The notes beneath the pieces were generated by a model. That model searched no databases. It was not told the origin of the DNA and was given only the letters and a program-made list of their open reading frames with translations. Below, one piece after another: positions 1 to 63,361 of a stretch of 64,000 nucleotides of DNA (the stretch's first letter is position 1; each line of letters begins with the position of its first letter). This DNA is from Mytilus californianus. Taxonomy: Eukaryota. The stretch spans positions 96,906,001 to 96,970,000 of the forward strand of contig NW_026262581.1 in NCBI RefSeq assembly GCF_021869535.1, given 5' to 3'. The translations under genes were made by a program, and so were the position numbers.

Positions 1-2488
1 CATATAATTCCAGGAAAGAACCACCATGCTTAATGGTTATCACATTGTCACCAAAGACTATTTCTACTGTGTATGGACTCTTTTCTATTACTTCAACATC
101 AGGGGTCAAGGTTAAAGATCCTGAAAGATCTATCTGTTGTTCATTTATGAAAAACTGGGAACTTCCACTGCTTGAAATTGGTGATGCAACTGTGAAATTC
201 TTTAAATTAGTTTCAATCCAGATCTGTTTCAAACAAAGTGCCTGATGCTCTGCACAAGGTAAATGTCTTATATATACTGTCAACATTGAGTTCTTCAAAA
301 ACAGAAATTCTCCAGATGTTTCTAACTGGTAACTTTGACCATCAAACATGGTAAAGTGACCTTGTCCAAACAGGGAACATGTGTAAGCTGAAGATGATGA
401 TGGAATAGTTGTCAAGGCAACATCACAATCAACACCATACCATCCTGTACTACAGTCTGCACAATCTGCACCAGTAAACTTAGCAAGACACTCACAAGTT
501 CCATCTACTGTAGAACAAGTTCCACCTCCACAGGGTAATCCACGTGAGAACGGACAGACATCACTACAGGTAGTGCCCCAGTATCCTAAATCACATACAC
601 ACTTGTAATTTGTGAATGTACCAGATACACACATGAATGAGCATGAATCTCCTGTCCAGTCAGGGAACTGTCTTGAACCAAAACTATTACAAAAATCTTT
701 GGCTGGTGAATCTGGGTCATCAACTGATATTCCACAAATCTCAGATAAAGCCAAAATTACCTCCATAGTTTCATCTTTGTCTTTCAGGACATGACCATTA
801 AAAATACAGTCTTTGTACATGTATTCTTGCACCTGTGGTCCCTCATCAGCACAAGCAACATTGAATTTTTCAGAGTAGATTGCCTGGTTACAGAAATCGG
901 TAAGGCTTGGATCGATATTATCTGGATGGGAGAAAACATCATATATTCCTGTATCTGGGATTTCTGCAACATAATCTACCAGTATTCGTTCAGGCTGGGA
1001 CCATGGTTCATTTGGCATCGTTATCTCTAATCCTCCTACAGAGTCTGTCAATGTTGATCCTGTTCCTGAGTTCATGTTCCAGTTATTTGATAAACCCTCT
1101 TCAGAACCAGACAAAACACTGAAAGCATTCTGTCTTATTTCATTTACTGTCCTTTCATCTTTCCAGATTCTCAAATCGTCAAATTCACAGATACAGTTCC
1201 AATTAACACCAGTTCTATCATCACTAGGATAATTCCATTGGCCAATCATGACATCTCCTCCTGGTTTAACAGGGATAGGATCATCATCAGGAATCTCTAA
1301 AACTTCTTGACTCATCTGAAGATCATCTCTGATGAGGTACGTTTTCATCAAACGTGTATCATTATTCCATACAACGCCCAAATTGTACCATCTATCCTCT
1401 TCTACTAGCAATGATGCAAAGTCTAGAATTTCTCCATTTTTATGCATAGATATGGTGCCATCACATATCAATGTAGAGAATACATCTTCATCTACCTTAT
1501 TAGAGTATATAGTCTGACATTCTGTTGTGGCTTCTTTCAGTTTAAATTTAATCTCAAAGGTTGATTTTGTCTCAGTAAATGAATTCAGAGTTTCTGTCAC
1601 CATATTGGACCTGTTAGTTTTTAGACCATATCCACCAGCATTTGAAACAGGTAGAATACTACTGAACATTGATGAACCACTCGCTGTAAAGGACTCAGCA
1701 AAGTTCTCATGAATGGACTGTGTGCTTAGGGTACTACCCATTAATGTTTCACCTGATTCGGTTACAAAGTCATCCGAGGAATTGCCATTGCAGCTACTCA
1801 ACATGCCAGAACTCTGGTCACAAAGTGATGGTGAAGCTTCCACGGATACATCAAGGTGATCTTCATAAGTGTCAATGTCAATAGTCATTTCGTCTCCAGC
1901 CTTCACTTGAAATCCTGTTGTTGATACTTGCACCAGTTGTATGTCACCATCAATAGTTACTCCATCACCTGCAACTACTGGTTCACCATCTATGTAGGTC
2001 GATGCTACCCCATTCAGTACTGACACTACAGCAGTATGTTCACCTACTTGTATTCCTACAGACTGTGCACCAACACTGTTATAAAATTCTGAATTGGGTA
2101 CTTGTAAAACATTGACCTTGACACTAGTTCCTGATGATAGTGGTGCAGAAATAAGTGTCTGTTCTCCTGGAATGTGGTTGTTATAAATAGCTCCATCAAA
2201 AGTTTCAAAATGTCCAGGGTAAAAAAGCTTAGATGTGTACTTATTATTAACAGTTGTTTGTGTAAGTGTATTGATGATTGAACAATCTGTGCCCACATGT
2301 CCATCTTGACAGGGTTGACAGTCATCTCCTCTTGATCCATCATAGCAACTGCAAGTTCCATCAGTAGCATTACATGCACCATTGCCATAACAAGGATTGG
2401 AGGCTCCACCTGGACATTCATATTGACATTCAGATCCATAGTAACCATTGAAACATTTACAGTGTCCAGTTTCTTCAGTAACATTATC
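1..2488 (-). CDS. Exon 38 (runs off window): EGF, VWD, LamG/pentraxin-like, Cys-rich, EGF, second VWD
   Basis: Acceptor tttcag|GAT at 2488; frame open to base 1 (absent from ORF track). DNVTEETGHCKC..., FYPGHFETFDG, RWYNLGVVWN..VMIGQ..FDDLRIW..EGL..W, FGQGHFTMFDG. Confidence 0.9.
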
Positions 2489-5400
2489 CTGAAACAAAAA
2501 ATATTGAATCATAGTCAAGTTTGTTAACAAATGTGTAAATGATTCACAAATTTAAATAAATATTGTGAGATTTGTTATTATTTTGAATAATACAAGTAGG
2601 TGACAATCGCAATAATAAGAACTTGCATTCTAATATCCGATATATATATCTGTATGCAGAATTTTCCTGAAATGCAATAATTAATCTTGACCTTTTTGTC
2701 CTTTCTTCCAAAATTGCAATAATAAATGCATGCAAGAATTTCTAATTTACAGTATGGTTTTAAAAAACAGCCTAACATTTTGTTTTTTTTTATGACCTCT
2801 TACTTTTCAATGTGCATTGTTTTAATTATGATTAATAGTATACAACTGTATAGTTTGCACTGACATGCATTTTTTGTATTTGTTCAAAGAATTTGATGTC
2901 AAAAACTGCTACATTCTTATTGATTTGCAGGAATATTTATTTTTTTATCTGTAATTTCATTTGCAAATCTGGTTATAAGTGTTTAAATTTTTTTTCAAAA
3001 ATGCCAATTGGTTGCTATAGCCCATACTTGCTATATACCTTTGAGCTGTTGCACGAAAAAACTTACTAGATGTGGAATTGATGTACAAATCTTTGAAGAG
3101 TCTCCAATATCTGTGGTATACAAATGTGTACTCCACCATTTGTTTGCAAAAGAGGACAACACATTCCATGACACATCTGATGTACCATCAAACCTACAAA
3201 TAATACAAATGTTGTTATTAATGGAATAGAACTGCTAACTCTGTTTTGTCACGGAAATGGATATGAGGTTTGAGTTGATACAATAAATGACTGATGATGT
3301 CTAGTTAATCAAAGCAACACACCCGACTTTGATTTCATGGACTATGTGTGATCTTATGCATATGTTTATAGAAGTTTATTAAGATTTCTCAAATATAGTC
3401 TTATTTGTTTCAATCCAATGTTTTAATTTTGATTTAACTAGTAAATAAAAGTAAACTTAAAATCAAGTCCAGAAGTAATCCCTATAAAGTAATTCATAAA
3501 ATTATGCTGCTATTTTGTTTTGTCTAATTTGCTGATGCCTTCTTTAAAGTTAAATTTTATATGATAATTAAAATAGATGTTTTAATTGTGTATTTACCAA
3601 TGAAGACTAATGAACAAGCAAAAACAAGTTTAAATAAAATGATTCGCTGAGCGCAGCTGGATACAACCGCAGATGTCCAACCCTGAACAGTTTGGGCAAA
3701 AATGGACACAATATTCACACTTGATACAGGTCTGAATTTGGATTGTAATTAAATATTTGACACATAATAGGTTTCTGACACCGAATAACTGTAGTCAAAC
3801 AAATTAGAATGAATTGGTTATACGATTTGAATAAATATATTCAATTTTTTGCTTTTGTGCAATACACTATACTGTTGCGAATTGACCCCCCCCCCCCCAA
3901 AAAAAAAAAAAAAAAAATTTTTTTTACCCCCCCCCCCCCCCCTTTTTTTGCAAAAAAAAATAATATTTGAAGAAATTTTCTTTTTAATTTCTGAAATCTG
4001 AAATGAAAAAAAAAATTGCCCCCCCCCCCCTTTTTCCAAAAAAAAAATTCTTTCCCTCAATCAAGATATGGTCATAATCTCAATTCAAATTTCCAATAGA
4101 GTTTGCAACCATAATTACCAATTTAAATACATCATAAAAGTCTTAAAATAGAAAATGACACACATAATCATTGCTAAAATTAATATTCCTTTAATAGTAA
4201 CTTTTAAGAATAAATTGACAGCTAATCACCTCAAGACAATACAAAATTTCTTTATACATAATTTAAAAGCAGTGTAAGGGAGGTAATCCAAACATACACA
4301 ACATTGTACTTTAAGTGTGTTTGGATTAACTCCCTTACACTGTTTTTAAATTGTCCATTAACCAGGAAACCTTTGTTTTCCCCCCTTTTTTGCCCCTAAT
4401 ACCTAAACAGTTTGTTTCCCCCCTTTTTTGCCCCTAATTCCTAAACAGTTTGAGCCTTGACCCCAAAGTCAATCCTAACCATCCCTTTGTGGTATGGAAA
4501 CTTGTGGTATAATTTCAGAGGGATTCATACACCGTTCCACAATTTACCATACCACCAATAAAGATAAATGAGCTATTTGATGAGTTAACCAAACTTGATG
4601 TAAATAAATCATCAGGAACTGATAATATTGGACCCAAAATCCTTAAAATAAGTGCCCCATATATTGCCACTCCTCTCACATATATATTCAACAGAATGAT
4701 AGATACTGGTATATATCCTTCATTATTGAAAAATGCTAAGGTAACACCAGTTTACAAAGATGGTGACAAGGTTTTAGCAACAAATTACAGACCAATATCT
4801 GTTCTTCCATCTCTATCAAAAGTATTAGAAAGGCATGTCTCAAATAACATGTACAAGTACTTGTCTAAATTCAAACTTTTACATCCAACACAATCAGGTT
4901 TCAGGCCACATCATTCTTGTCAAACTGCACTTATTGATATCATTGACAAATGGCTGCAAGAAATGAATGATGGTAATTTAAACTTAGCAATACTGTTGGA
5001 CTTCAAAAAAGCATTTGATCTTGTAGATCATGACATTCTTTGCTTAAAGCTTGCTATTTACGGATTCAGTGAGTCTGCAGTAGGTTTTTTCAGGTCATAC
5101 CTAAGTAATAGAACACAGCAAGTAAACATTTGCAATGTGAATTCTGATAAAAAAGATGTGAAATTTGGTGTCCCCCAAGGATCTATACTAGGTCCTCTAT
5201 TATTTGTCTTATTTATAAATGACCTTCCCCTTTGCATTAAAAATTGTAAAACAGACTTGTATGCTGATGATACTACTCTCCATAAATCCGGGAAAAACAT
5301 AGAAAATTTACATGATGATGTACAAGAAGATTTATGCAGAGTTGAAGAATGGTGCAAAATTAATAATATGTTCATCAATACCAAAAAAACAAAATGTTTG

Positions 5401-6374
5401 GTTACTGGAACAAGTCAGAAGTTATCAACTCAATCTTTTCAACCAAATTTACTAATAAATTCAGAAACACTACAAAATTCATCATGTGAAAAATTATTAG
5501 GTGTTAAAATTGACAGCACACTTAGCTGGACAAATCAAATTGATCAAATTTGTGCTAGCATTTCATCAAGAATATACCTTCTTTCTAAATTAAAGAAATT
5601 TTTAGATATTAATGCCAGGAAAGCATACTATAATGGGTATATTCTGCCGCTCATCGATTACTGCTGTATTGTTTGGGGAGAATGTAAAAATGAAGGGATG
5701 GTAAGAATATTAAAACTTCAAAAAAGAGCAGCAAGATTAATTCTTGATGCAGACCCTTTATCCCCATCAGCCCCCTTATTTAAAGAACTTGGATGGATGA
5801 CAGTTGAAAACAGAATCAAATACCACAAATATTTACTGCTACATAAATGTATGCGGAAAGAAGCACCACAGTACCTACTTCAAAAGTTTCAACTTATATC
5901 TGTTAATAATCCTTATGCTTTAAGGGGTGTCACTCAAGGTAATTTGATAGTTCCTAAGCCAAAAACTGAACTGTTTAAAAAATCTTTTGCTTATTCTGGA
6001 TCAGTTTTATGGAACGGACTACCATATGAAATGCGTAAAGTGCAAAACACTTTTTCTTTTAAACAAATTATAAAACAATACTTGAGACAGTCCCAATATT
6101 CAGTCTTGAAATGATTGCAACTATTACTCTTTTTTTTAGAATGTATGATTTTGATTTGTATATAATATCTATTCACTACATGCAATCTGTAACTGTTTTA
6201 TATGTTCTAATTATGGTACATGTATATTGAACTATCATGATTATACGATTGTGTTAATATGTTGTATGTTTGCTTTTTTGACTTTTATTATTATTTTTTA
6301 CATGTATTGTATATGAGGGCCTCAGGGAAGATTAGTAATTGTAACTAACTGTGTTTACCCTCTTTAAATAAAGA

Positions 6375-6414
<40 letters not shown>

Positions 6415-54400: not shown

Positions 54401-57400
54401 GGACTTTCACCAGTCAAATCAAAGTCTGATGTAACTTCTAGTGTGGCCCCTTCATCAACAACAAAATTACACTGACATCCATGGTTCAGATCATCAAATG
54501 CTGATATAGTCATCTTAGCATTGTTTGTAATAGTAACAGTACCAGTTCCATCAGATGACAATTTAGCCACTGTAAGAGCTGTTTCTAGTGATAATGATGC
54601 ACTGTTTGTAACCTGAAGTTCATTTAAAGAGGTTGGTAATGATATTCCACTAATTAGTTCTGTAGATCCAGCATGATCTAACACTAAGACTGTTGTTCCT
54701 GATTTGTCCAAGTAAACAGTTCCTGAAAAATCAAGTTATTTAATTACTTGGTATTCAACTTTTACCTTAGACACAAAAATGTATAATCAAATGTGTATAA
54801 ACTTTCATGAATTTCCTTTTACTTCATTAATTACTCATTGATTTGTTACAATAGAACTTTTACTTACTAATTTAAATGACCTAATTCAAGATTTTCATTG
54901 ATAAACATAACATTTCGCTGCATTTCTATAATATATCTGCCAAAGAAATGTTCCCCATCCTCAACCAAAATATAACTGCAACAAGTCTTGACAGTAAAAT
55001 ATTTTTATTACCTTTTTTTTGTATTTTCTTAGAATGTTCTGAATTGACCTTTTGAAATTGGAACTTGTAAACTGGCAATAAAAAAATATATGCAAAAATG
55101 AAACAACTACAAGGAACTATTTGCTTCATCTTATTTTTGCATAATTGGATTTAAAACTTCCTTGTTTACAATATCCATCTGACAAATCAATTTACCTGGT
55201 GATCCATTTCCATCAGCTGATTCAACAGAAATCAATCCATCACTAAAGTCATAGGACGAGGATGAAATAACAGATATTCTTCCACCTCCTCCTCCACCAG
55301 AGCCTCCCTGAGCAAGTATTTTTCCAGTCCCTGTCAATGTTTTACACTGTATCAGTATACTCCCACCGCTGCCACCAGATGTTCCAGATGCACCATTCAT
55401 GTTGACTTCACCATTCAGAGTGAAAGTATTTGTAACAGAGAACTCAATCTGACCACCACCTGCTACAGAGCCATGTCCATTACTGCCATAGTGTCTGGGA
55501 TACACAATACTACCATAAAGTTTGTTTGGATTATCTTTTCCTGATCCACCATAACTGGCCCCATTACTGCTACTAGCTGCAGCACCTGGGCCACCTGAGG
55601 TGTATCCTTTGCCTTCACCAGTAATTTTTCCTCCAAACATTACGTTAATTGAGCCACTATTGATTTTCGTCAGATTTCTATAAGTATCCCCTTTTATAGT
55701 GAGAGTTCCTCCAGCTTCAATTGTAATACTGGTGAATGTGTGTGTTCCAGGATTCAGCTCACATGAAGAACCTTTGTAGATATACATCTTTTGACCTGAA
55801 CATGTGGCAGTGCTTGTTTGACTGATCTGGTTTGTTTTATAACCACTCTTCAGTGAAATGTAGGTAGAAGGGAATGAATAACTACCTGATATGTTATAAT
55901 TGGTTAATTCTAGTTGTATCTGTTGAGTAGGACGGATACATGTACTTGTGTGTTCTATGTTACCACCATCGTCAATAACTAGATCTGTAAGTGTTATTTT
56001 GCTGGTTGTTGTAGTGTCCACATAAGAGATGCCTGTGTTGGCTGGTGAACCTATTTTATAAATGCCACCATTCCGAATAACTACAATTTTTGTTTTTGAA
56101 TTAACTGTTCCACACAGCTCCAAGTAGTAATCTTTTTCCACATTAACTGTTGCTGGAAGTTCAATTTTCCCGTAACTACTGACATACACATTAGCTCTGA
56201 GAAACAACTCTGTCAATGCATTTGGATATCTTGTGGATAAGTACACCTCTGTATAGCTGTCCACTGTAAAGTTAGAGTCAGTTGTATCTGTGGTGATAGT
56301 ACCAACTGTTGCCCCAAGGGATTCTCCTACAGTTAATCTCTTACCAAAGGAGACTCTGGAAGCAGTTTTGATATTAATTTCGTCCACCTGTACAGTTGAT
56401 TCTGTTGTTGGTACAGGTAGTCTGGTAAAAGTATCAGTTGTGTGAATGTTTTTCACTATCACCTGCAAATATGTATTCCAGTTAGTTTTTCAGATATTTA
56501 CATGGTAAATTTCTCTGTTTGAAACATGTTTTTAAAATTGAGAATGGGAGAGGGGAATGTGTCAAAGAGACAACAACCCGACCATAGAGCAGACAACAGC
56601 CGAAGACCACCAATGGGTCTTCAATGCAGCGAGTAACTCCTGCACCCAGAGGTGTCCTTCAGCTGGCCCCTAAACAAATATGTATACTAGTTCAGTGATA
56701 ATGGACGTCATACTAAACTCCAAATTATACACAAGAAACTAAAATTAAAAATGATACCAGATTAACAAAGGCCAGAGGCTCCTGACTTGGGACAGGCGCA
56801 AAAATGCGGCGGGGTTAAACATGTTTTTTGAGATCTCAACCCTCCCCTATACCTCTAGCAAATGTAGAAAAAACAAATGCACAACAGTACGCACAGTAAA
56901 ACTCAGCTAAAGAGAAGTCCTAGTCTGATGTCAGAATAGGAAACAAAAGAAATAAACAAAATGACAATAATACATAAATAACAACAGACTACTAGCAGTT
57001 ACTGACATGCCAGCTCCAGACCTCAATTAAACTGATTGAAAGATTATGTCTTCATCATATGAATTTCAGGCACAATCCCTCCTGTTAGGGGTTTAGTATT
57101 ATACCATCATAAAATATATGAGAAGAACATAACCCGTGTCATGCCAACAACTGGTTTTAGAATAAATATGTTTAATTCCGATGCAAAGACCCTATAAGTG
57201 AATCAATATTAAAGCCAAAATATGCAATCTTTAATGACCTGACAACAGAATCGTAACTATATCCCTTCTTAATAAGTCTGTTTAAAGGTTTTGTTAGCTT
57301 TTGAGGTGAATACTGACATTTTTGTGCTTTGTAAAGAATATTACCATAAAAGATTGGATGTGAAATACCCGAACGTATAAGATGTCTGCATGTTGAGTTA

Positions 57401-60400
57401 TATTTACGAATGATGTCCTTATACCGATGATAAAATTTAGTAAATGTTTTGATTAGTTTATGATATCGAAAACTCTGGTGTAATAATTTTTCAGTAATAC
57501 ATAAATTTCTCTCGCTAAAATCTAATAAGTTGTTACATACACGAGAGAATCGTACAAGTTGAGATATATAAACACCATAAGATGGTGACAAGGGAACGTC
57601 ACCATCTAATAAACAGCTGCGCCATGAGCGCATGATACGCCCGTCGTCTTGTGTGTGAATTTTTATGCAATAAGCATAAATAGTTTCTGACATACGGCGT
57701 GACATGAAAAAAAAAAAAACTTTTTTTTTACAAAAGTCTCAATATCTCTAAAATAAAATTTTGAATCAAAACCAAAAAGTATACAGATCTTAAGATTAAT
57801 ATAACTAAGAAGTGTGTAAAATTTAAAGCAATAATCATAAATCGTTTTTGAGATACGGCACAACATGTGAAAACCCCCTCCCCCTTTTTTTACAAAATAC
57901 TCAATAACTCAAAAATAAAATTTTGAATCATCACCAAAAAGTATACAGATCTTCAGGTTAATATAACTAAGAAGTTTGTAAAATTTTAAGCAATAATCAT
58001 AAACTGTTTTTGAGATACGGCGCGACATGTGAAAAAAAACACACACCTGTTTTAGTTACTAAGTCCCGTAACTCAAAAAGTTTTAATTTTATTTTCACCA
58101 AAAAGTATACAGATCGTTTGACCATCATAAGAAACAACTATGTTAAGTTTCATGAAATTTGGATAAGTCATTCTCAAGTTACGGTGCGACATGTTTACGC
58201 CGGACAGACAGACGGACGGACAGACGGATGGACGCTGGACATTTGTTTACCATAATACGTCCCGTCAAAAATTTGACGGGTGTATAAAAATGGATAATTA
58301 ATGATAAGAAATGAAAAATCATCTCTTTTATCATAAATTTTTGTATTAAGCTTCCCGTTAATGATATAGATATCAAGATCAAGGAAAGGACAGTGGTCAT
58401 TGTTAGTATTAGCTTTATTTAAAGTAAGTTCAACAGGATAAATTTCTTTAGTATACATACTGAAGTCTTCATTATTGAGAGCCAATATATCATCCAAATA
58501 TCTAAAAGTATTGTTACATTTTTGTATCAGATGTTGTTTCGATGGGTCTATGCTGATTTTAGTCATAAATTGTAACTCATAACAATACAAAAACAGGTCC
58601 GCAATAAGTGGTGCACAGTTAGTCCCCATTGGAATTCCGATAACTTGACGATATACGTAATCTCCAAAGCGAACAAAAATGTTATCAAGTAAAAATTCAA
58701 GGGCAGATATAGTATCAAAGCATGTCCAATTGACATAGTTCTTTTGTTTGTTGCTACTAAAAAATGACCTAAAAGAGTTTGAACATATGTATTCGCATTC
58801 CGACTTTTTAAATGCCCATTTAATTAGGTGTGTCAATTTTTTCTTAATAAGAATATGAGGCAAAGTGGTATATAGGGTAGAAAAATCTAAACTTTGAACC
58901 GATTCAAAATCACCAATATATGCATGCAATTTATCAAGTACTTCCAACGAGTTTTTGACACTCCAAAAGTAGTTAATTCCACTATTTTTAAAGGCCTTAT
59001 TTGAACAAGGCCTTTTTGCATTTAATTCATTTCTTGTATAAAAATTAATTTCCCACTATTTTATTCTGAAGATTTTTCTTCCTTAAAACTTATATTTTAC
59101 TGTGAAACTTATTTTTACTATTTCTTTTTGATAGCAGGATATGTAACACCTATTGGTATTATTGACTATATATATTCACTTAAGAAAGAAGAATCAAGGG
59201 TGCTACTTGACATTTTGAGAATAACACATGACTTTAAATTACTCCACTTGTACTATAGCCCAAATGTGAACATTCTTACTGTATTGTTTTAATCATATAT
59301 TGTTTTGAATACCTTTCTATTGGGACTGATTCCATTAACATCTTGACCAAGGTAGACAACTCCAGCACCACCATCCTCCCCACCTCCATTACCTGCACCA
59401 CCGTAGGAAGTAAGTTCACCATAGATGTTACCAGAAACATAAACAAGGGAGATTAATCCTCCCCCTCCTCCTCCTCCATTATAACCATTGCCTCCATTCA
59501 CATTGATGGCTCCTGAAGACAAGATAATAAAAAAATCAAATATGTGCTATCTATGATATTGAGGAAATTAATCTTAAAATTTCCTTACAAAGAATGTTGA
59601 AATGGTATTTACTCTATATTTTTTAAAACAGAATGCTCTGCAATAAAAATTTGATACCAATTAATTTTTTTATGACAATAATTTTCTGAGGGATGACATG
59701 CTGTATTCAACTATTTATGTTTTGATTTATAAATTCAATACACCTGTAGTCTAATTTCTTTTTTTAATCAAATCATTATAAAGCCTGGTTAAATGTATTA
59801 GATATGTAATATATTAAATAAGACAAAAATGAGGAAGAAAAAGAAACATACCTGTAACATCAGCAGAATCAGCTGTTATCCAGATACTTCCTCCAGAGCC
59901 TCCACCACTGTTTGCCGAGGCATTCTCTCCTCTAAATAAAAAGCAATGTGTTTAGTCTATATTGTATACATGTATTAGAAAAAAGAACATATAGGATAGA
60001 TACATAACATAATATTTCTCATTAATTAATATATTGGGCCCCAGTAGGGTACCACCCTTAGGTTGCAATAGGATGTCTCTTAAAAATGCCTCAAGTCACC
60101 AGGTCGCTTATAAGCAAATTTAGGTAAGTCTAATAAGTAAGATTTTGAACATTTTTAAAAGGTCATAGGTCACAGATCGTTTTAAATGAGACATCAATGT
60201 TGCAAGGTCACTGGTCAGATTTTACCCTGTTGGAGCAAAATATATCAAAAGAACAGATTTGATTGATTATTCAAAAATATATCTAAATCATAGTGAAACT
60301 TTCAATCATCATTAAAAAAAAATGCTCTTTTCTTTTTCTTCCATAGCACCCTACAGTTCATCATTCAAATTCTTTGATTTAAACATTTCTCACAATTAAT

Positions 60401-63361
60401 TTTCAGTATTAATATAAGTATCTATACGGGTAAATTTTCACTGAGAATAATTGTTCATCCGTTCTTAACTTGTAGTAACTGATTGATCATCATACCATGA
60501 TTAGAAAGGTTTTACTGCAGCTTTATCCAAATTTATTTTTTCGTTCTTTAATTAAAACTTTTTATAAATTTCTTAGAGAAATGTATTGCTTGCAATGCAA
60601 TTTTCCTTATAATTACTATTTTCAAGGGGCATAACTTTTTGAAAAATAGTTGATTGGCACTGAATTTCGAACTTGTCAGCGACATTGCTGATATAAACCT
60701 TTGATATAAATTTGATAAAAGTATTGCAAGAATTGTACATTTGAAAGTGCTAACAATGCAATTTTCCATATAATGAATATTTCCTAGGGGCATTCCTCTT
60801 TGAAAAATAGTAGATCAGCACCGATTTTTCGAAATTGTTCGAATTCCATAAGATGAATAATTGTTATAGCTGTAATCATAATAACATACCTGGCATTCAA
60901 CTCTCCTTTATGAGTGAGCGTTGTAGCTGTAATTTTGAGTACACCCCCACCAGCTGTTGACTGACCACCTTTACCATGTAAGGTTGGTTGTGTGAAATGA
61001 TCATAGGCATCAATCAGACTCATGTTGGTTCCTATGATACCTCCTTCACCTCCATGGCCAGCTCCAGAATAATCTGAAAAGAAAACCAGTCAACATCTTA
61101 AATATTGATTGATTGATTGTTTGGTGTTAAACGCCACTATCATCACTATTGTGGCACTCAGTTTTTATTGGTGGAGGAAGCATGAGTGCCTGGGCAGGAC
61201 CACGACTTTCAGTAGGAAAACTGACAATCCTAGTCAATTAAGATTGGAGTCAAGCACACCTGCCACTTGCAGGATTTTAACTCACAACCTCAGAGTTGAC
61301 AGTCTAGTGTTACAGAACATTTTAAATACTAATAAACTCATTCATTAAACTTTATTTAGTACTGTTCTTTTATTTCTTAGAAATTAAATGGAACTTAACT
61401 TGAAAAAATGATATATACTTACAAACTGTATAATGAGAATTATATCTAAACTGTCTCCTTCAACTTATTCACTAATTGTATGCATATTTTAAATTTCATA
61501 CAGGCACAAAAACAATGTGGATAGCTTACCAGTTTAATAAGTTGACAGAATTGTCCAATTTTTATTTTGAAATCAGAAACCTAAGAGAACATTCATATAA
61601 AATTTGGTGCAGATTATATCTACCGTACTAATGTTTGAAAAGATTTTTGAATGCATAATGTAATACATACTAAATAAATGTGACAGAAGTATAATTGAGC
61701 ATGGGCAATGAATGTAAAATTTGAAGGGAACTGAATTTGGAACATCACAGAATATAAAATCACTGATTTACCCAGTATTTTCTATCTTTTTTCTGGGTTC
61801 ATGTTGTTTAGTATGCAGAAATATCTGACATAACTTTGTGCCATACATCCCGAGTATAATTGTTCTCAAGTTTGGTTTTATCAGCCAAGAAGTTTCAAAA
61901 GAAAATACTTTTTAAACAGTTAACAGGCAGAAGTCTGATGCCTAGTAACTACACCAACTTAAAAATCAAATTTTTGCTAATTAATATTTTACAATGAAAC
62001 CATGAAGTTTGGTCAATGGTATAATCATTTCATTGTTATGCTATTTACAGTAAATGAAAGGTATAGTTTTCAGTACTTGAAAAAGAGCCAAATGAATCAT
62101 CCCTATATAAAAAATCTGGATGCATTATCTTTGTTTTTATTTTTTCTATTGTTTTTATTCAGAACAATTACCATTTCCGCCATCCCCAGCATCCCCACGG
62201 TGATCAAGGTTTATAATTCCTCCTTCTTCAGTTTCAACCTCTGTTGCTGTAACTGTCAGTTTTTTGGCAATTATCTCCCCTGAGGCACCAATCAACAGTT
62301 TATACAAGTCCATATTGTATTCCACATCTGCATCTACCAAGTAAAGTGTACTGTTCTGCTTCACGTTTAAGTTCTGCATGGAGTAAGTAGAAGTAGTTGT
62401 ATGTGTTTGGCTTGTTTTTGATAGAGTCAAATTGGTTTTAAACAAGGTCAGGTCCTGTAAACCTCCTAAGGTTCCATCTATATAGTTTACAGTGCTAAAC
62501 CACTTGACTGTGGATGGTAATGTCAGTATTCCATTTTCATAGACTTTGGCATGTGCTGGGAAATATAAAGATACTTGTCTGATGGTTATTTCACGGTTTG
62601 CTCCAACAAGTAACGTTCCAATTTTGTTTGGTTCCTTTACAAAGTCATCATTTCCAGAGAAACTGAGGGCTAACAGAGAGTTGATTGCACTGCTGTCAGC
62701 ACTGGGTTCTAGTGCCAGGTGAGCACCATTCAGCAGCTGCAACTGATCCACCTGTATTGAATTACTGTCAGTAAATGTTATCCAAGTTCTGCTGCTTTCA
62801 TTGGCTTTTATTGTGTCTAACTCAAGGTCTGCTGAATAGTCCTACAATCAAGATTCAACTTTTATATTTCATAAACCACAGTTCACATTTTTTTCCAATT
62901 TACTTTGAAAATGTGTTTTTTTTAATTCCTATACATTTTCATGTAGTAATCAATACAGTCATCAATTTGTGTTGTTGTTACATCACATTTTCATTTCCCT
63001 TGAACCTAAACCATTTACAATTAAGGCGTTATTATTTTTCAGTACTGTGACAAGATTCCTTGCCAGGTAACTTTGATTGGCAGTTACAAGTGAGGATAAA
63101 AAAGTTCAAAACTGGATTGAATAAAAACAGCTAGCTAAATTTCCTTCTGTCGGCTATTTTTATTACTTACTCCTACATTATGAGCCACTTGGTTGTCTAC
63201 AATGATTTTAGTTTTGGATCCTGTTACGACATACACTGTACCGGCACCACCATAACCAGCTGATGACTGTCCACCATAGGCAGAGGTGTCACCTGTGAAA
63301 CCCGAGGATGTGCAATATACAGCTGAACGACCTCCAGCCCCACCTCCTGTACTACTGGTTC
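1..63361 (-). CDS. Giant multi-exon gene (38 exons in window, >=9,320 aa, incomplete at both ends): Gly-rich ~400-aa repeat array + EGF-like array + VWD/LamG-like C-terminal region; probably extracellular
   Basis: Hand-spliced: 38 exons with GT-AG boundaries, all 37 phases compatible (24 phase-1, 9 phase-0, 4 phase-2), 27,972 nt open; motifs read continuously across junctions (e.g. TVGTI|DIKYG, NVGE|TLHLDG, PHL|DNVTEE). Confidence 0.92.
3067..3193 (-). CDS. Exon 37 (127 nt), second half of YTAWFGY module
   Basis: ttgtag|G...CTA|gtaagt; phase 2 to 0; K-FDGTSDVSWNVLSSFANKWWSTHLY...PHL; needed to join exon 36 to exon 38 in frame. Confidence 0.88.
3623..4535 (+). mobile_element. Non-autonomous Helentron/DINE-like repeat (host of the LINE); residual arm at ~6414-6470
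   Basis: About 240 bp (ttcgctgagc..agctggatac..ggtccaaccctgaacag..) shared with 39805-40045; internal short tandem repeats (ccccctttttttgcccctaat). Classification by resemblance. Confidence 0.6.
4536..6414 (+). mobile_element. 5'-truncated CR1/L2-group LINE with intact RT frame and (ATT)n tail
   Basis: ORF 4696-6114 with NYRPISVL, DFKKAFD, GVPQGSILGPLLF, YADD; frame also open upstream to ~4540; aataaa then (att)n at ~6378-6414; no endonuclease in the fragment. Confidence 0.93.
4696..6114 (+). CDS. Non-LTR retrotransposon reverse transcriptase (partial ORF2)
   Basis: Canonical non-LTR RT motifs in the 472-aa ORF. Confidence 0.9.
   Translation: MIDTGIYPSLLKNAKVTPVYKDGDKVLATNYRPISVLPSLSKVLERHVSNNMYKYLSKFKLLHPTQSGFRPHHSCQTALIDIIDKWLQEMNDGNLNLAILLDFKKAFDLVDHDILCLKLAIYGFSESAVGFFRSYLSNRTQQVNICNVNSDKKDVKFGVPQGSILGPLLFVLFINDLPLCIKNCKTDLYADDTTLHKSGKNIENLHDDVQEDLCRVEEWCKINNMFINTKKTKCLVTGTSQKLSTQSFQPNLLINSETLQNSSCEKLLGVKIDSTLSWTNQIDQICASISSRIYLLSKLKKFLDINARKAYYNGYILPLIDYCCIVWGECKNEGMVRILKLQKRAARLILDADPLSPSAPLFKELGWMTVENRIKYHKYLLLHKCMRKEAPQYLLQKFQLISVNNPYALRGVTQGNLIVPKPKTELFKKSFAYSGSVLWNGLPYEMRKVQNTFSFKQIIKQYLRQSQYSVLK
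6523..6808 (-). CDS. Exon 36 (286 nt), EGF end + first half of YTAWFGY module
   Basis: atttag|AT...AA|gtaagt; phase 1 to 2; DFVGPGHCTIPC...DGSYTAWFGYNNANG...PTQFRPG. Confidence 0.9.
7205..7318 (-). CDS. Exon 35 (114 nt), laminin-type EGF
   Basis: ctacag|GT...G|gtatgt; GGDVCECYDDHTNGHWTGEACDACVTGWGLPFCTDCDP. Confidence 0.9.
7605..7757. repeat. Imperfect ~75-bp-arm palindrome (MITE/Helitron-like)
   Basis: aaggaatgactg...aataacccg-tgtag-cgggttatt...cagtcattcctt. Confidence 0.7.
7996..8184 (-). CDS. Exon 34 (189 nt), EGF-like
   Basis: ttacag|GA...G|gtaaga; GDCLLLEGNIAPVCVCEHGFTGLSC... Confidence 0.9.
8424..8545. repeat. Short imperfect palindrome (MITE-like)
   Basis: atatctgcccagctattatt...tttgccctctggcaaa...aataacagggcagatat. 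Confidence 0.5.
8748..8882 (-). CDS. Exon 33 (135 nt), EGF-like
   Basis: tttcag|GT...G|gtaaga; GEPDCNTYGLC...CPGSPKCSGN. Confidence 0.9.
9379..9871. repeat. 30-bp minisatellite, ~16 copies (acatgacaagaaaccagtttactgtacaac)
   Basis: Direct tandem copies read in sequence; a 155-bp five-monomer block is itself duplicated. Confidence 0.97.
10280..10531 (-). CDS. Exon 32 (252 nt), EGF-like
   Basis: tatcag|GT...G|gtatgt; GTCDVENYFPPKC...ITDCP. Confidence 0.9.
11337..11513 (-). CDS. Exon 31 (177 nt), EGF-like
   Basis: taacag|GA...G|gtaagt; GDDCTDRGCPG...DPDCNGL. Confidence 0.9.
11797..11917. mobile_element. Short interspersed repeat fragment (SINE-like); related copies at ~17040-17098 (inverted) and ~51085-51155
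   Basis: Shared terminus gttgtctcattggcaatcataccaca..ttattttt seen three times in the window. Confidence 0.65.
12023..13765 (-). CDS. Exon 30 (1,743 nt), ~4 EGF super-repeats
   Basis: ttttag|GA...G|gtaagt; matches 595-aa Cys-rich ORF 12003-13790. Confidence 0.95.
13995..14940 (+). mobile_element. Helentron/DINE-like non-autonomous element with ~161-bp tandem core (~5.3 copies) and 3' stem-loop
   Basis: aagttagagaa recurs at 14004, 14167, (14209), 14369, 14531, 14692, 14853; ends atgccccc-ttcgctacggc-aggggcat-aaaa. Confidence 0.75.
15155..15760 (+). mobile_element. 3' fragment of a second CR1/L2-type LINE
   Basis: LPHVRTTAYGLQSLRYEGAKLWNELP..WCGSSCQCFAC* then 3' UTR, aataaa and (ttatgtc)n tail. 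Confidence 0.8.
15988..16158 (-). CDS. Exon 29 (171 nt), EGF-like
   Basis: ttatag|GA...G|gttagt; GNSWVGELCEETGCPG...PECS. Confidence 0.88.
16821..16989 (-). CDS. Exon 28 (169 nt), EGF-like
   Basis: ttgtag|GGC...G|gtaaac; GWYTEDCSKPCENG...TEP. Confidence 0.88.
17464..17598. repeat. Near-perfect palindromic MITE-like element with an internal duplication of one arm
   Basis: agtgtgctagtgacctaatacgatatatatggggtcag...(arm repeated)...catatg...ctgaccccatatatatcgtattaggtcactagcacact. Confidence 0.75.
17872..17978 (-). CDS. Exon 27 (107 nt), EGF-like
   Basis: ctacag|GT...GAG|gtaaag; GWTGDACDIPDCPGGCEGNGFC...CACLE. Confidence 0.88.
18179..18387. mobile_element. MITE with ~24-bp TIRs; related copies at ~29196-29394 and partial at ~2580-2753 and ~63390-63520
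   Basis: tactgaaaattcagaaattattgc ... gcaataatttctgaatttacagta. Confidence 0.75.
18726..19396 (-). CDS. Exon 26 (671 nt), EGF-like repeats
   Basis: tttcag|A TGT GAT...G|gtaaat; phase 2 to 1; CDEKWFGHSC...CTCVP. Confidence 0.9.
19871..20012 (-). CDS. Exon 25 (142 nt), EGF-like
   Basis: tttaag|GT...AA|gtatgt; GGCESATHTCTCRPGWTGIGC...PDCK. Confidence 0.88.
20572..20884. mobile_element. MITE with 13-bp TIRs flanked by TA
   Basis: ta|catacctgccaac ... gttggcaggtctg|ta. Confidence 0.7.
21007..21750 (-). CDS. Exon 24 (744 nt), EGF-like repeats
   Basis: ttttag|GC...G|gtaaga; GPDCGSPDCPGDPNCNSHG...LDCSDR. Confidence 0.92.
22415..23984 (-). CDS. Exon 23 (1,570 nt): last Gly-rich unit fused directly to first EGF repeats
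   Basis: ttgcag|ACA...G|gttagt; ORF 22410-23990. Confidence 0.94.
24916..24957 (+). ncRNA. Decayed type I hammerhead ribozyme motif in a short interspersed repeat
   Basis: cgtca-CTGATGA-gtct(tttgt)agat-GAAA-tgtgtttc-tggca: stem I, core and stem II recognisable; stem III degraded. Confidence 0.6.
25040..25317 (-). CDS. Exon 22 (278 nt), Gly-rich unit
   Basis: tttcag|CA...AAT|gtaagt; ANGGGSGGRIAI...GGPGTVYVQ..LWIDN. Confidence 0.9.
25690..25870 (-). CDS. Exon 21 (181 nt), Gly-rich unit
   Basis: ttgcag|ACC...G|gtaagt; TLHLDGSISVGG..GGGSGGSVMI; a weaker same-phase donor (gtacaa) lies 21 nt upstream. Confidence 0.85.
26111..26590 (+). mobile_element. Helentron/DINE-like element (two ~187-bp units, (GGAC)n, 3' hairpin)
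   Basis: ccaaaaaaatgact.agtccaactacct repeated; ggacggacggac; atgcccct-cgacattttgtcg-caggggcac. Confidence 0.7.
26600..27800 (+). mobile_element. Helentron/DINE-like element with ~165-bp tandem core (~4 copies), (GCC)n and 3' hairpin
   Basis: caaagtcaat..accatgactgagggggc..atctccatgg repeated ~27085-27730; ends gacgccgccgtcgccgg..gtctcgc..gcaagacaaaaa. Confidence 0.7.
27800..28400. repeat. Degenerate tandem-repeat element (aaagggcaataactcc units)
   Basis: Motif recurs at ~27810, 27977, 28140. Confidence 0.5.
28480..28853 (-). repeat. 83-bp tandem amplification of the exon 20 3' end including the GTAAGT donor
   Basis: Units 28672-28754, 28755-28837, 28838-28920 near identical; degenerate copies to ~28480. 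Confidence 0.9.
28854..28987 (-). CDS. Exon 20 (134 nt), Gly-rich unit
   Basis: gtttag|GA...GAG|gtaagt; GGRSYDTTTVGNQYGSVLTASEPGSGGG...NVGE. Confidence 0.88.
29628..35846 (-). CDS. Exon 19 (6,219 nt), ~5 Gly-rich units
   Basis: tttcag|CT...G|gtaaac; 2,106-aa ORF 29560-35880. Confidence 0.96.
36615..36911 (-). CDS. Exon 18 (297 nt)
   Basis: ttttag|GC...A|gtaagt; GTIAFGKLSL...GGSHGGFGGG. Confidence 0.9.
37216..37265 (-). ncRNA. Minimal type I hammerhead ribozyme motif (same sense as host pre-mRNA)
   Basis: UAUUGUC-CUGAAGA-C-GCCA(CACUUGU)UGGC-GAAAC-AU-GUC-GACCAGAAUA. Confidence 0.7.
37741..37790 (+). ncRNA. Minimal type I hammerhead ribozyme motif (antisense to host gene)
   Basis: UAUUGUC-CUGAAGA-C-GCCA(CGCUUGU)UGGC-GAAAC-AU-GUC-GACCAGAAUA; palindromic ACAUGU at stem III. 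Confidence 0.7.
37954..38311 (-). CDS. Exon 17 (358 nt)
   Basis: ttttag|GCC...G|gtaatt; AMLEIADGG..GDMSGFIHI. Confidence 0.9.
38852..39213 (-). CDS. Exon 16 (362 nt)
   Basis: tatcag|GT...ATG|gtaaat; ELRGHGLVSANGG..GGSGGRIAV..GGPGTVFV. Confidence 0.9.
39397..39630 (-). CDS. Exon 15 (234 nt)
   Basis: cttcag|TA...A|gttggt; FDVTISGGSGYGSLYEPTETGSQGG..GGGSGGSVWI. Confidence 0.85.
39805..41112 (+). mobile_element. Helentron/DINE-like element with ~165-bp tandem core (5-6 copies), microsatellite and 3' hairpin
   Basis: 5' part homologous to 3640-3880; aaaatcaaaagggagc units; ends ggacggacagacgg..ccataatacgtcccgtaaacggccgtataaaaa. Confidence 0.75.
41187..41642 (-). CDS. Exon 14 (456 nt, symmetric phase 1-1): Thr-rich mucin-like flanks around CxNxTx hexapeptide repeats
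   Basis: tttcag|TT...G|gtaaga; EIPTTTTTTTEEP..CDNTTSCENSTECE..TTTPEP. Confidence 0.85.
42526..42700 (-). CDS. Exon 13 (175 nt)
   Basis: taacag|GAT...G|gttagt; DIKYGAEFRAD..GAGHGSQGGGHS. Confidence 0.88.
42953..46965 (-). CDS. Exon 12 (4,013 nt), ~3 Gly-rich units
   Basis: ttacag|GA...ATC|gtatgt; 1,388-aa ORF. Confidence 0.95.
48434..48660 (-). CDS. Exon 11 (227 nt)
   Basis: ttttag|C...G|gtataa; LDFDGTITAYGGG..AGAGTIYI. Confidence 0.87.
49205..49388 (-). CDS. Exon 10 (184 nt)
   Basis: ttctag|GT...AG|gtatgt; GIIKVDG..GGGSGGTIVL..GGAGGRI. Confidence 0.9.
50240..50400 (+). mobile_element. SINE-like interspersed repeat fragment
   Basis: ggagcaggaacctcttacccttccagcgaacctgagttcac..ggggttcttgttgctcaatc resembles an abundant bivalve repeat (recognition from memory). 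Confidence 0.5.
50488..50692 (-). CDS. Exon 9 (205 nt)
   Basis: taacag|ATA...G|gtatgt; ISGENLATGAGHGAPGG..PTETGSGGG. Confidence 0.88.
50905..51250 (-). repeat. Three degenerate tandem copies of the exon 8 3' end
   Basis: Translate as NPGSTIELSG.., NTGSTIDLSGGGY.., NPGSTIDLSGQGY vs exon NPGSTIDLSGGGY. Confidence 0.85.
51268..51608 (-). CDS. Exon 8 (341 nt)
   Basis: acaaag|GA...AAG|gtaaat; GTLTNIQNLIIASG..GTGKGEK. Confidence 0.9.
51760..51960 (+). mobile_element. SINE-like remnant with (TCAA)n tail
   Basis: gccactggacattaag..aacaatcaatcaatcaatcaatc. Confidence 0.5.
52092..54722 (-). CDS. Exon 7 (2,631 nt), ~2 Gly-rich units
   Basis: tttcag|GA...G|gtatgt; 875-aa ORF. Confidence 0.95.
55196..56462 (-). 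CDS. Exon 6 (1,267 nt)
   Basis: ttgcag|GTG...G|gtaaat; 445-aa ORF. Confidence 0.93.
56534..59012 (-). mobile_element. 5'-truncated Penelope-like retroelement (RT is the C-terminal domain, Naiad-like), split by an insertion
   Basis: LDFSTLYT, GIPMGTNCAPLIADLFL, RYLDDI, PFLDL in 58287-59012; frame resumes at 57609 (YPFL|DGDVPLSPSYG) to stop at 57172; long 3' UTR. Confidence 0.85.
57610..58286 (+). mobile_element. Helentron/DINE-like insertion inside the Penelope-like RT
   Basis: Tandem ~150-bp units, (GGAC/AGAC)n, 3' hairpin cccgtcaaaaatttgacggg; inserted in an A/T run with no TSD; same terminus type as 41080-41112. Confidence 0.82.
59313..59512 (-). CDS. Exon 5 (200 nt)
   Basis: cttcag|GA...AAG|gtattc; GAINVNGGNG..GGAGVVYL. 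Confidence 0.9.
59852..59931 (-). CDS. Exon 4 (80 nt)
   Basis: atttag|A...G|gtatgt; RGENASANSGGGSGGSIWITADSADVT. Confidence 0.9.
60890..61073 (-). CDS. Exon 3 (184 nt)
   Basis: tttcag|AT...AG|gtatgt; DYSGAGHGGEGG..GGGVLKI..ELNAR. Confidence 0.9.
61105..61310 (-). mobile_element. Degenerate tRNA-derived SINE with (ATCA)n tail
   Basis: Minus strand starts ..gaggttgtgagttaaaatcctgc (degenerate B-box) and ends in a tetranucleotide tail. Confidence 0.55.
62172..62841 (-). CDS. Exon 2 (670 nt)
   Basis: ttgtag|GAC...G|gtaatt; DYSADLELDTIKANESSRTWITF..GDAGDGGN. Confidence 0.87.
63171..63361 (-). CDS. Exon 1 in window (191 nt); further exons lie upstream
   Basis: ttctag|GA...GGA|gtaagt; GGGAGGRSAVY..GGAGTVYV..IIVDN; begins mid-unit with an acceptor. 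Confidence 0.9.

Follow-up and report, generated by a model that had tools for sequence, protein, structure and literature searches.

The window analysed here, 64,000 nucleotides (nt) of the Mytilus californianus genome (contig NW_026262581.1, positions 96,906,001 to 96,970,000), carries on its minus strand a long series of exons encoding glycine-rich/β-helix units, EGF domains, and VWD and LamG-like domains. The window likely covers the central part of a single very large, intact bivalve protein-coding gene, the product of which would be a secreted or surface-exposed modular giant. The cleaned gene model comprises 37 exons (27,516 nt, 9,171 codons) with no stop, is open at both window edges, and has introns of 183 to 3,329 nt, with phase kept at 36 of 36 junctions. 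That these exons form one gene is supported by the presence of composite exons, the stop-free chaining of phases, an exon-by-exon collinear homologue and a conserved junction between the Gly-rich and EGF regions.

The model was obtained with a gene finder that combined GT-AG introns with a 3-periodic second-order Markov coding model, for which the seven largest frames served as training data; in a second round splice-site matrices were added and a minimum intron of 45 nt was set. The minus strand carries every large open frame (2,115, 1,396, 883, 850, 598, 533, and 452 codons), the frames at high coordinates being Gly-rich and Cys-poor (G 13-19%, C <1.5%) and those at low coordinates Cys-rich (C 15-17%). 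An open frame of 6.2 kb at ~35% GC is beyond chance. Raw chaining gave 40 exons (28,419 nt) in the first round, or 38 (28,263 nt) after removal of two 5-nt "introns", and 40 exons (28,383 nt) with the splice matrices; every model version starts at 63361, runs off the window at base 1, and has zero in-frame stops. An earlier, sequence-only reading of this DNA had proposed a single intact gene of 38 exons, 27,972 nt, and >9,300 residues, with neither end in the window. The single gene is supported by the stop-free 9,171 codons, the composite exons, and the collinear locus, and the model is indeed open at both 63361 and base 1; the exon series is reproduced (38 exons, 27,993 nt, i.e. 21 nt off the earlier figure) if one doubtful Thr-rich exon, at 41187-41663, alone is retained, without which the protein, still giant, drops to ~9,170 residues. 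The 2.5-kb exon that the same reading had found missing from its track of open reading frames belongs to a frame (2-2551) that runs off the window edge, edge-crossing frames being skipped by the lister.

Sequence of the 6.2-kb exon is present in 20 public sequencing runs, of which X1, X2, X5, and X21 were aligned to positions 36800-42750. X21 is the sole run recorded as RNA raw reads; the other three runs belong to two studies. In the X1, X2, and X5 contigs, introns 36912-37953, 38312-38851, and 39214-39396, which read CT..AC on the plus strand, i.e. GT..AG on the minus strand, are skipped, base-exact to prediction. Contigs without introns cannot be DNA, thus these contigs are transcripts, and the gene is transcribed and spliced. 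The comparison with spliced RNA that had been suggested for the predicted junctions has in this way covered 3 of the 36, all 3 of which are exact. The X1 contig (2,423 nt) reaches into the big exon, with 1,356 nt of it lying below 36800; short RNA contigs also cover intronic positions 37059-37223 and 37648-37780. Rfam searches of the window and of 37000-38000, the latter at E ≤ 1 with permissive filters, returned no family.

The closest relatives of the big exon are unnamed open reading frame products in ENA/Logan assemblies, with 96%, 78%, and 75% identity. The 78% relative lies on a 212,934-nt contig (ENA ERZ26273167), from which eight overlapping loci were merged, with no conflict, into a homologous locus of 86,109 nt that is either the orthologue in another bivalve or an old paralogue. 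There, the window-trained gene finder recovers the same exon series and phases. Exon lengths of 191, 80, 200, 341, 205, 184, 4,013, 234, 358, 297, 278, 142, 107, 169, 171, 177, 135, 189, 114, and 286 nt are equal in the two loci, and the remaining exons differ by multiples of three, e.g. 6,225 versus 6,219 nt.

That two or more adjacent genes had been read as one, e.g. a Gly-rich β-solenoid gene followed by an EGF-VWD gene, would accord with the public gene models of relatives, which are fragments of 1,300-4,600 residues, and with the ends of the X1 and X5 contigs at the 5' edge of exon 39397-39630 (X1 one base past the edge, X5 seven bases inside), the RNA evidence not being locus-wide. Contigs ending exactly on exon edges are, however, expected of graph-based assemblies at splice branches; the X1 and X5 ends are typical of such a branch and are no evidence of a transcript start. 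Moreover, exon 22415-23984 is one open frame holding both Gly-rich units and EGFs, exon 1-2488 is one exon encoding EGF-VWD-LamG-EGF-VWD, and the Gly-rich/EGF junction is collinear in proteins of Ptychodera and Branchiostoma. With all 36 junctions in phase and the homologous locus having the same exon sizes and phases, a fusion of separate genes is quite improbable.

Table 1. Features of the window, in window positions. "Homologue" is the collinear 86-kb locus; dN/dS is the ratio of non-synonymous to synonymous substitution rates between the two loci.
Feature	Position	Strand	Remark
Exon 1	63171-63361	-	Gly-rich domain tail; gene goes on upstream; 191 nt in homologue too
Exon 2	62172-62841	-	Unit 1 β-helix half; 664 nt in homologue
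Exon 3	60890-61073	-	Unit 2 Gly-rich domain; gene model and homologue
Exon 4	59852-59931	-	Unit 2 GGGSGGSI coil; 80 nt in both loci
Exon 5	59313-59512	-	Unit 2 GGGGGGG coil; 200 nt in both loci
Exon 6	55196-56462	-	β-Helix part, weak G8-like stretch (22.7 bits, cut-off 22.9), unit 3 start
Exon 7	52092-54722	-	Two full Gly-rich/β-helix units; dN/dS 0.155
Exon 8	51268-51608	-	β-Helix part; 341 nt in both loci
Exon 9	50488-50692	-	Gly-rich domain start; 205 nt in both loci
Exon 10	49205-49388	-	Gly-rich coils; 184 nt in both loci
Exon 11	48434-48660	-	Gly-rich domain end; gene model and homologue
Exon 12	42953-46965	-	3.5 units; length of 4,013 nt shared by both loci; dN/dS 0.098
Exon 13	42526-42700	-	Gene model; alignment of run X2 contig stops exactly at 42526
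Exon 14	39397-39630	-	Intron 39214-39396 spliced out in X1, X2, X5 contigs
Exon 15	38852-39213	-	Introns on both sides confirmed by spliced contigs
Exon 16	37954-38311	-	Introns 38312-38851 and 36912-37953 confirmed by spliced contigs
Exon 17	36615-36911	-	Contig joint 36910/37953; matched in homologue
Exon 18	29628-35846	-	Five full units, 6,219 nt; modelled unit is 33478-34755; dN/dS 0.098
Exon 19	28854-28987	-	3' end and donor tandemly repeated in intron
Exon 20	25690-25870	-	Gly-rich coil; gene model and homologue
Exon 21	25040-25317	-	Gly-rich coil; 278 nt in both loci
Exon 22	22415-23984	-	β-Helix, last Cys-bearing Gly-rich domain, first EGFs
Exons 23-34	7205-21750	-	Teneurin-type EGF array; Pfam, PDB match, homologue exon sizes
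Exons 23-26	21007-21750, 19871-20012, 18726-19396, 17872-17978	-	EGF array
Exons 27-30	16821-16989, 15988-16158, 12023-13765, 11337-11513	-	EGF array
Exons 31-34	10280-10531, 8748-8882, 7996-8184, 7205-7318	-	EGF array
Exon 35	6523-6808	-	Cys-poor module part one; conserved in homologue; no Pfam match
Exon 36	3067-3193	-	Cys-poor module part two, less conserved
Exon 37	1-2488	-	EGF, VWD, LamG-like, EGF, VWD; open at window edge
Doubtful exon	41187-41663	-	Thr-rich, mucin-like, 18-nt periodic; likely non-coding
Pseudo-exon	50914-51195	-	Sits on 93-bp duplication
RVT_1 open frame of retroelement	4513-6111	+	533 codons, Pfam E 5.5e-30; inside 3.3-kb intron, antisense

Amino acid identity between the two loci is 47-79% (12 exon pairs), with dN/dS of 0.10-0.23, dN of 0.16-0.48, and dS of 0.9-2.5 in the 11 pairs with usable dS (the twelfth has none). 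These values show strong purifying selection, as had been suggested from frame conservation, the ratios being rough since dS is saturated. A decaying or non-functional copy, its frames kept by recent duplication or repeat homogenisation, would be consistent with the state of the introns, which contain retroelements and tandem copies of exon ends and donor sites, and with the lack of exon reads in X21, the run recorded as RNA. Such a copy is, however, difficult to reconcile with 9,171 codons without a stop, with saturated dS at these dN and dN/dS values, or with the existence of spliced transcripts; the units within the one protein share only 25-40% identity, so they have not been recently homogenised. 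Decay of this kind is very improbable.

The architecture begins with the Gly-rich/β-helix units, of which a profile finds 17 copies along the model, in agreement with the earlier count of at least 17: one partial at the 5' edge, 15 essentially complete, and a last consisting of the Cys-bearing Gly-rich half. The unit of ~420 residues has three 34-residue coils (GGxGGG / GGGSGGSI / GGGGxGGRI) and the motif GAAGTxY, followed by a DN-led β-helix; in an alignment of 121 sequences Gly is invariant and R142 nearly so. The AlphaFold2 model of one unit based on this alignment (predicted local distance difference test (pLDDT) 94.6, predicted template modelling score 0.91) has residues ~200-426 as a right-handed parallel β-helix. 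In exhaustive structural alignment the best structures were the Tapirin adhesin (4wa0, Z 10.4, root-mean-square deviation (rmsd) 2.9 Å, 153 aligned residues), the HxuA and EtpA TPS domains (Z 9.8, rmsd 4.1 Å, 174-175 residues), and the TMEM2 ectodomain (8c6i, Z 9.2, rmsd 3.5 Å, 163 residues). Z values of 9-10.4 are common among β-helices and would indicate only a shared fold.

The Gly-rich half, modelled alone (pLDDT 95.3), has strands at 74-84, 108-118, and 142-153, i.e. 34 residues apart, with confident non-strand glycine runs between them and one 11-residue β-strand per 34-residue coil; it is thus modelled as a solenoid of 34-residue coils stacked on the β-helix. Its best PDB structures are a springtail antifreeze protein (7jjv, Z 7.3, 23% identity, rmsd 3.1 Å over 99 of 126 residues) and, at Z 7.2, the FHA secretion domain. 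These matches are too weak to imply more than a common arrangement, no solved homologue having been found. At E ≤ 0.001 Foldseek found nothing in the PDB for the two models, and the unit is without a match in Pfam (E ≤ 1, and also in lists with Pfam 38 families), in NCBIfam, or in the PDB by sequence and profile. Two G8 stretches on window exons score 22.7 and 19.3 bits, both under the cut-off of 22.9. Among predicted structures, the Gly-rich fold recurs with template modelling scores of 0.76-0.84 and rmsd of ~2 Å over ~180 residues; it is seen in bacterial proteins that also carry G8, Por_Secre_tail, CHU_C, or DUF11, in one Streptophyta cluster, and in mollusc clusters.

The EGF array that follows consists of 12 super-repeats of ~127 residues with four EGFs each, plus partial ones (~50 EGFs); the sequence-only reading had recognised the array and counted ~11 super-repeats. 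Pfam matches on the array are EGF_TEN (PF25024, 241 bits, cut-off 65), EGF_Teneurin (PF23106, 154 bits), and EGF_2, and the top PDB sequence matches are teneurin-3 (8r54, E 1.3e-19) and then teneurin-2; EGF_Tenascin scores 20.8 bits on window exons, under its cut-off of 25. The Cys-poor module that had been placed after the EGFs is found as exons 35-36 (6523-6808 and 3067-3193), which have no Pfam match, the first part being well conserved in the homologue. The VWD/LamG-like/VWD end is likewise as first described: the last window exon has VWD in two stretches (E 6.8e-12), and the LamG-like domain, below threshold in the window copy (Laminin_G_3, 19.4 bits), reaches 66 bits, in two stretches, in the homologue's last exon. 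The GDPH cleavage motif is missing from the VWD domains, as judged by eye on the sequence.

The homologous locus extends the view beyond the window at both ends, reaching neither start nor stop; no called gene was found upstream of its outermost 5' exon. Upstream of the exon matching 63171-63361 it has at least 5 more exons, encoding ~630 residues of Gly-rich/β-helix. The counterpart of the window's last exon is a single open frame of 2,622 codons; P0269, a 99%-identical cluster representative, has four consecutive VWD stretches and at least 2 LamG_3 stretches by Pfam and, by eye, the EGF-VWD-LamG module four times over before a fifth VWD begins. The next 3' exon (366 residues), which differs between two assemblies, has another LamG-like stretch. 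The homologue thus extends at least 2,000 residues downstream of the window counterpart as EGF-VWD-LamG modules, and the VWD/LamG-like/VWD part of the window would be the start of a tandem module array, the whole protein being probably near 12,000 residues.

Several stretches of the locus mimic exons. Region 28688-28795, which was dropped as an exon, falls within a tandem duplication (83 bp) of an exon end and its donor and is missing from the homologue. This repeat (28625-28930, 3.7 copies, 91% matches) copies the 3' end of exon 28854-28987 with its GTAAGT donor, leaving three in-line candidate donors; since 83 is not a multiple of three, a later donor copy would shift the frame. Region 50914-51195, also dropped, sits where a 93-bp duplication (51174-51350) has copied the end of exon 51268-51608. 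The copied exon end belongs to a 114-codon open stretch (50914-51255) with NPGSTIDLSG three times, which one stop parts from the true exon and which is missing from the homologue. The Thr-rich region 41187-41663 was dropped for its low complexity, its openness on both strands, its zero RNA depth in the 4 runs, and its absence from the homologue. It has good splice-site look-alikes and no Pfam match, breaks a Gly-rich domain mid-motif, and has an open frame on the plus strand (41173-41517); the neighbouring exon 42526-42700 does have X2 coverage. If ever spliced in, this region would place a mucin-like linker mid-domain.

Among the intronic repeats, the element at 39785-41177, composed of ~160-bp monomers, has very high depth in 4 of 4 runs, at thousands-fold in contigs and a maximum of 315 in the RNA raw reads. 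It is a high-copy transcribed satellite or short interspersed nuclear element-like repeat that is missing from the homologous intron, which measures only 941 nt. A 30-bp minisatellite at 9379-9872 (16 copies, also with a 155-bp period) lacks stops in several frames of either strand, giving spurious open reading frames. The intron harbouring the RVT_1 frame is that between exons 3067-3193 and 6523-6808. In the homologous locus, intronic minisatellites (merged positions 29577-31301 and 66787-67929) encode stop-free NGGLQSYNQG and CPLLMTSDRG repeats that were miscalled as exons; automated models of the unit family need repeat masking.

The known systems nearest to this architecture share some of its features. 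The EGFs share subtype and spacing with those of teneurins, including the CPG-x-PDC linkers, but teneurins have 8 EGFs, versus ~50 in 12 super-repeats here. Against a teneurin stands the lack of an NHL propeller, YD shell, Tox-GHH, and type II anchor in the window and the 86-kb locus, which stop short of the far 3' end: NHL, YD, and Tox-GHH have no Pfam match on the window exons, the homologue's C-terminal exon of 2,606 residues, or in the Pfam lists for the 86-kb locus, which agrees with the original remark that NHL/YD repeats are missing from the window. The same remark for FN3 and fibrinogen is borne out by the lack of a Pfam match on the window exons or the homologue's C-terminal exon; with no FN3 or fibrinogen globe, tenascin is ruled out. 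A gel-forming mucin/VWF/FCGBP type is ruled out since the VWD domains occur without C8 or TIL and are followed instead by a LamG-like domain. VWDE also combines VWD with EGF, and weak or faint PF26129 'Vwde' matches occur on the homologue's last exon; VWDE is described as far smaller than the mussel protein, and no record was found of β-solenoid units or repeated VWD-LamG modules in it. Sea-star Sfp1 and flatworm adhesion proteins are very large, contain VWD and EGF, and are secreted by marine invertebrates; they are not known to have a Gly-rich β-solenoid array.

With respect to the units, TMEM2, CEMIP, and fibrocystin/PKHD1L1 share the right-handed β-helix, and G8 is near threshold in the mussel protein; by contrast with these proteins, it has no significant G8, no hyaluronidase-type context, and at least 17 tandem units. 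Tapirin, FHA, HMW1, HxuA, EtpA, and autotransporter passengers, which provide the best structures for the unit (Z 9-10.4), are long, rigid, repetitive attachment rods; these bacterial β-helical adhesins, however, have no sequence relationship with the mussel protein, which has no bacterial secretion signals. The best PDB structures for the Gly-rich domain are springtail antifreeze polyproline II/polyglycine-II bundles (7jjv, 2pne), from which it differs in the low similarity (Z <8), the 11-residue strand per coil, and the lack of an antifreeze context. The ALK/LTK glycine-rich domain (PF12810) is ruled out, there being no Pfam (E ≤ 1) or PDB sequence/profile match and none among the 50 best structures.

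In an exhaustive search of the library, 2,448 representatives of 50%-identity clusters reached E ≤ 1e-3, and 159 of these E ≤ 1e-30. Named members come from Actinostola, Salpingoeca rosetta, Dreissena, Solemya, Mytilus, Asterias, Ptychodera, Saccoglossus, and Branchiostoma; a Mytilus paralogue carries G8. Every named relative is labelled "hypothetical" or "uncharacterized", no paper was found mentioning their identifiers, and searches with fold keywords likewise gave nothing relevant, in keeping with the initial judgement that this is not a characterised protein. No vertebrate member turned up in these family searches, none of which was aimed explicitly at vertebrates. Over its full length, the Gly-rich/EGF junction exon can be aligned with Ptychodera P0087 (41% over 530 residues) and Branchiostoma P0113 (37%). 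Since the junction is collinear in a mollusc, a hemichordate, and a lancelet, the architecture is older than the protostome/deuterostome split. More distant members, Saccoglossus P0125 and Ptychodera P0114, have signal-peptide-like starts and an F5/8 type C domain. The Planctomycetota proteins P0225 and P0132 (1,400-2,000 residues) have 5-7 copies of the Gly-rich domain, with ~40% identity, and C-terminal Ig and dockerin domains; ~40% identity between bacteria and mussel is unusually high for domain sharing of this kind. Among plants, Arabidopsis AT5G11700, which a preprint names PELE, is a conceivable DUF8003 or Gly-rich relative on which nothing here is based.

All recognisable domain types are extracellular, hemichordate relatives have signal peptides, and the Gly-rich fold occurs in bacterial secreted and surface proteins, all of which points to an extracellular protein, as first supposed. 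If the product were instead a receptor for adhesion or signalling, held in the membrane as a teneurin-like type II protein or by an anchor at its C-terminus, and not a secreted component of matrix or mucus, this would accord with the closeness of the EGF array to teneurin EGFs and with the position of both gene ends outside the sequence covered, which leaves room for an anchor. However, neither the 86-kb homologous locus nor the hemichordate relatives have NHL, YD, Tox-GHH, or a transmembrane-like segment, and the hemichordate relatives start with cleavable-looking signal peptides. Tandem VWD-LamG modules are, moreover, more typical of secreted multimerising proteins. A membrane-anchored receptor is therefore unlikely.

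For a secreted or surface-exposed product, the modules suggest a mechanism. The units, each with ~13-14 coils by strand count (at 4.8 Å per coil, ~6-7 nm), may stack into a stiff rod of ~100 nm or more, which the ~50 EGFs would lengthen, the solenoid and EGF array together making a stiff, multivalent rod of some hundreds of nm. The β-helix and LamG surfaces could bind glycans or matrix partners, and the VWD modules, which link molecules in mucins and VWF, could do so here, such that the product would serve as a scaffold, structural or adhesive, of the matrix, mucus, or cell surface. The rod shape, secretion, multimerisation, and role are what we infer; the data themselves show the structure of the gene, its splicing at three junctions, the selection on it, the folds, and the spread of the family.

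Beyond the locus, a wider reading is that the protein represents an unrecognised pre-metazoan extracellular family of ~12,000 residues with a new solenoid/β-helix repeat, which would form a very long rigid rod with an overlooked, conserved structural role, for instance in apical matrix, mucus, or adhesion; this we put at a little under an even chance. The family in this reading ranges from Salpingoeca through cnidarians, molluscs, and echinoderms to hemichordates and lancelets, and its Gly-rich half is also found in surface proteins of Planctomycetota, Verrucomicrobiota, and Bacteroidota and in plant proteins. Certain points weigh against the single giant gene and its proposed product. RNA-confirmed junctions amount to 3 of 36; the RNA nature of X1, X2, and X5 is guessed, with the spliced contigs as the argument; and X21, in the ~6% of the run sampled, gave zero exon reads and reads only on the intronic repeat 39785-41177, from which it follows that expression is low or tissue-restricted. 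Neither gene end is seen in the window or the homologous locus, so that a signal peptide or anchor of the mussel gene is not in view. The rod shape of the array would be an extrapolation from the one-unit model, and any functional role for a family member would be putative.

Although giant modular extracellular proteins shape tissues, mucus, and adhesion, automated annotation routinely splits or overlooks the largest of them. The locus described here provides a near-continuous 37-exon template, accompanied by a collinear second locus, for a family present in public databases only as "hypothetical" fragments, together with a confident fold model for a widespread ~420-residue repeat without a Pfam, NCBIfam, or PDB sequence match. 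The ~40% identity at the junction between mollusc and deuterostomes, with dN/dS of ~0.1-0.2, is evidence of an important function, and the Gly-rich half ties bacterial surface proteins to animal matrix proteins. If the wider reading is true, these proteins would be among the longest rigid protein rods in animals, missed because gene models fragment them. The mussel product is a candidate structural or adhesive component for foot, mantle, gill, or mucus proteomes.

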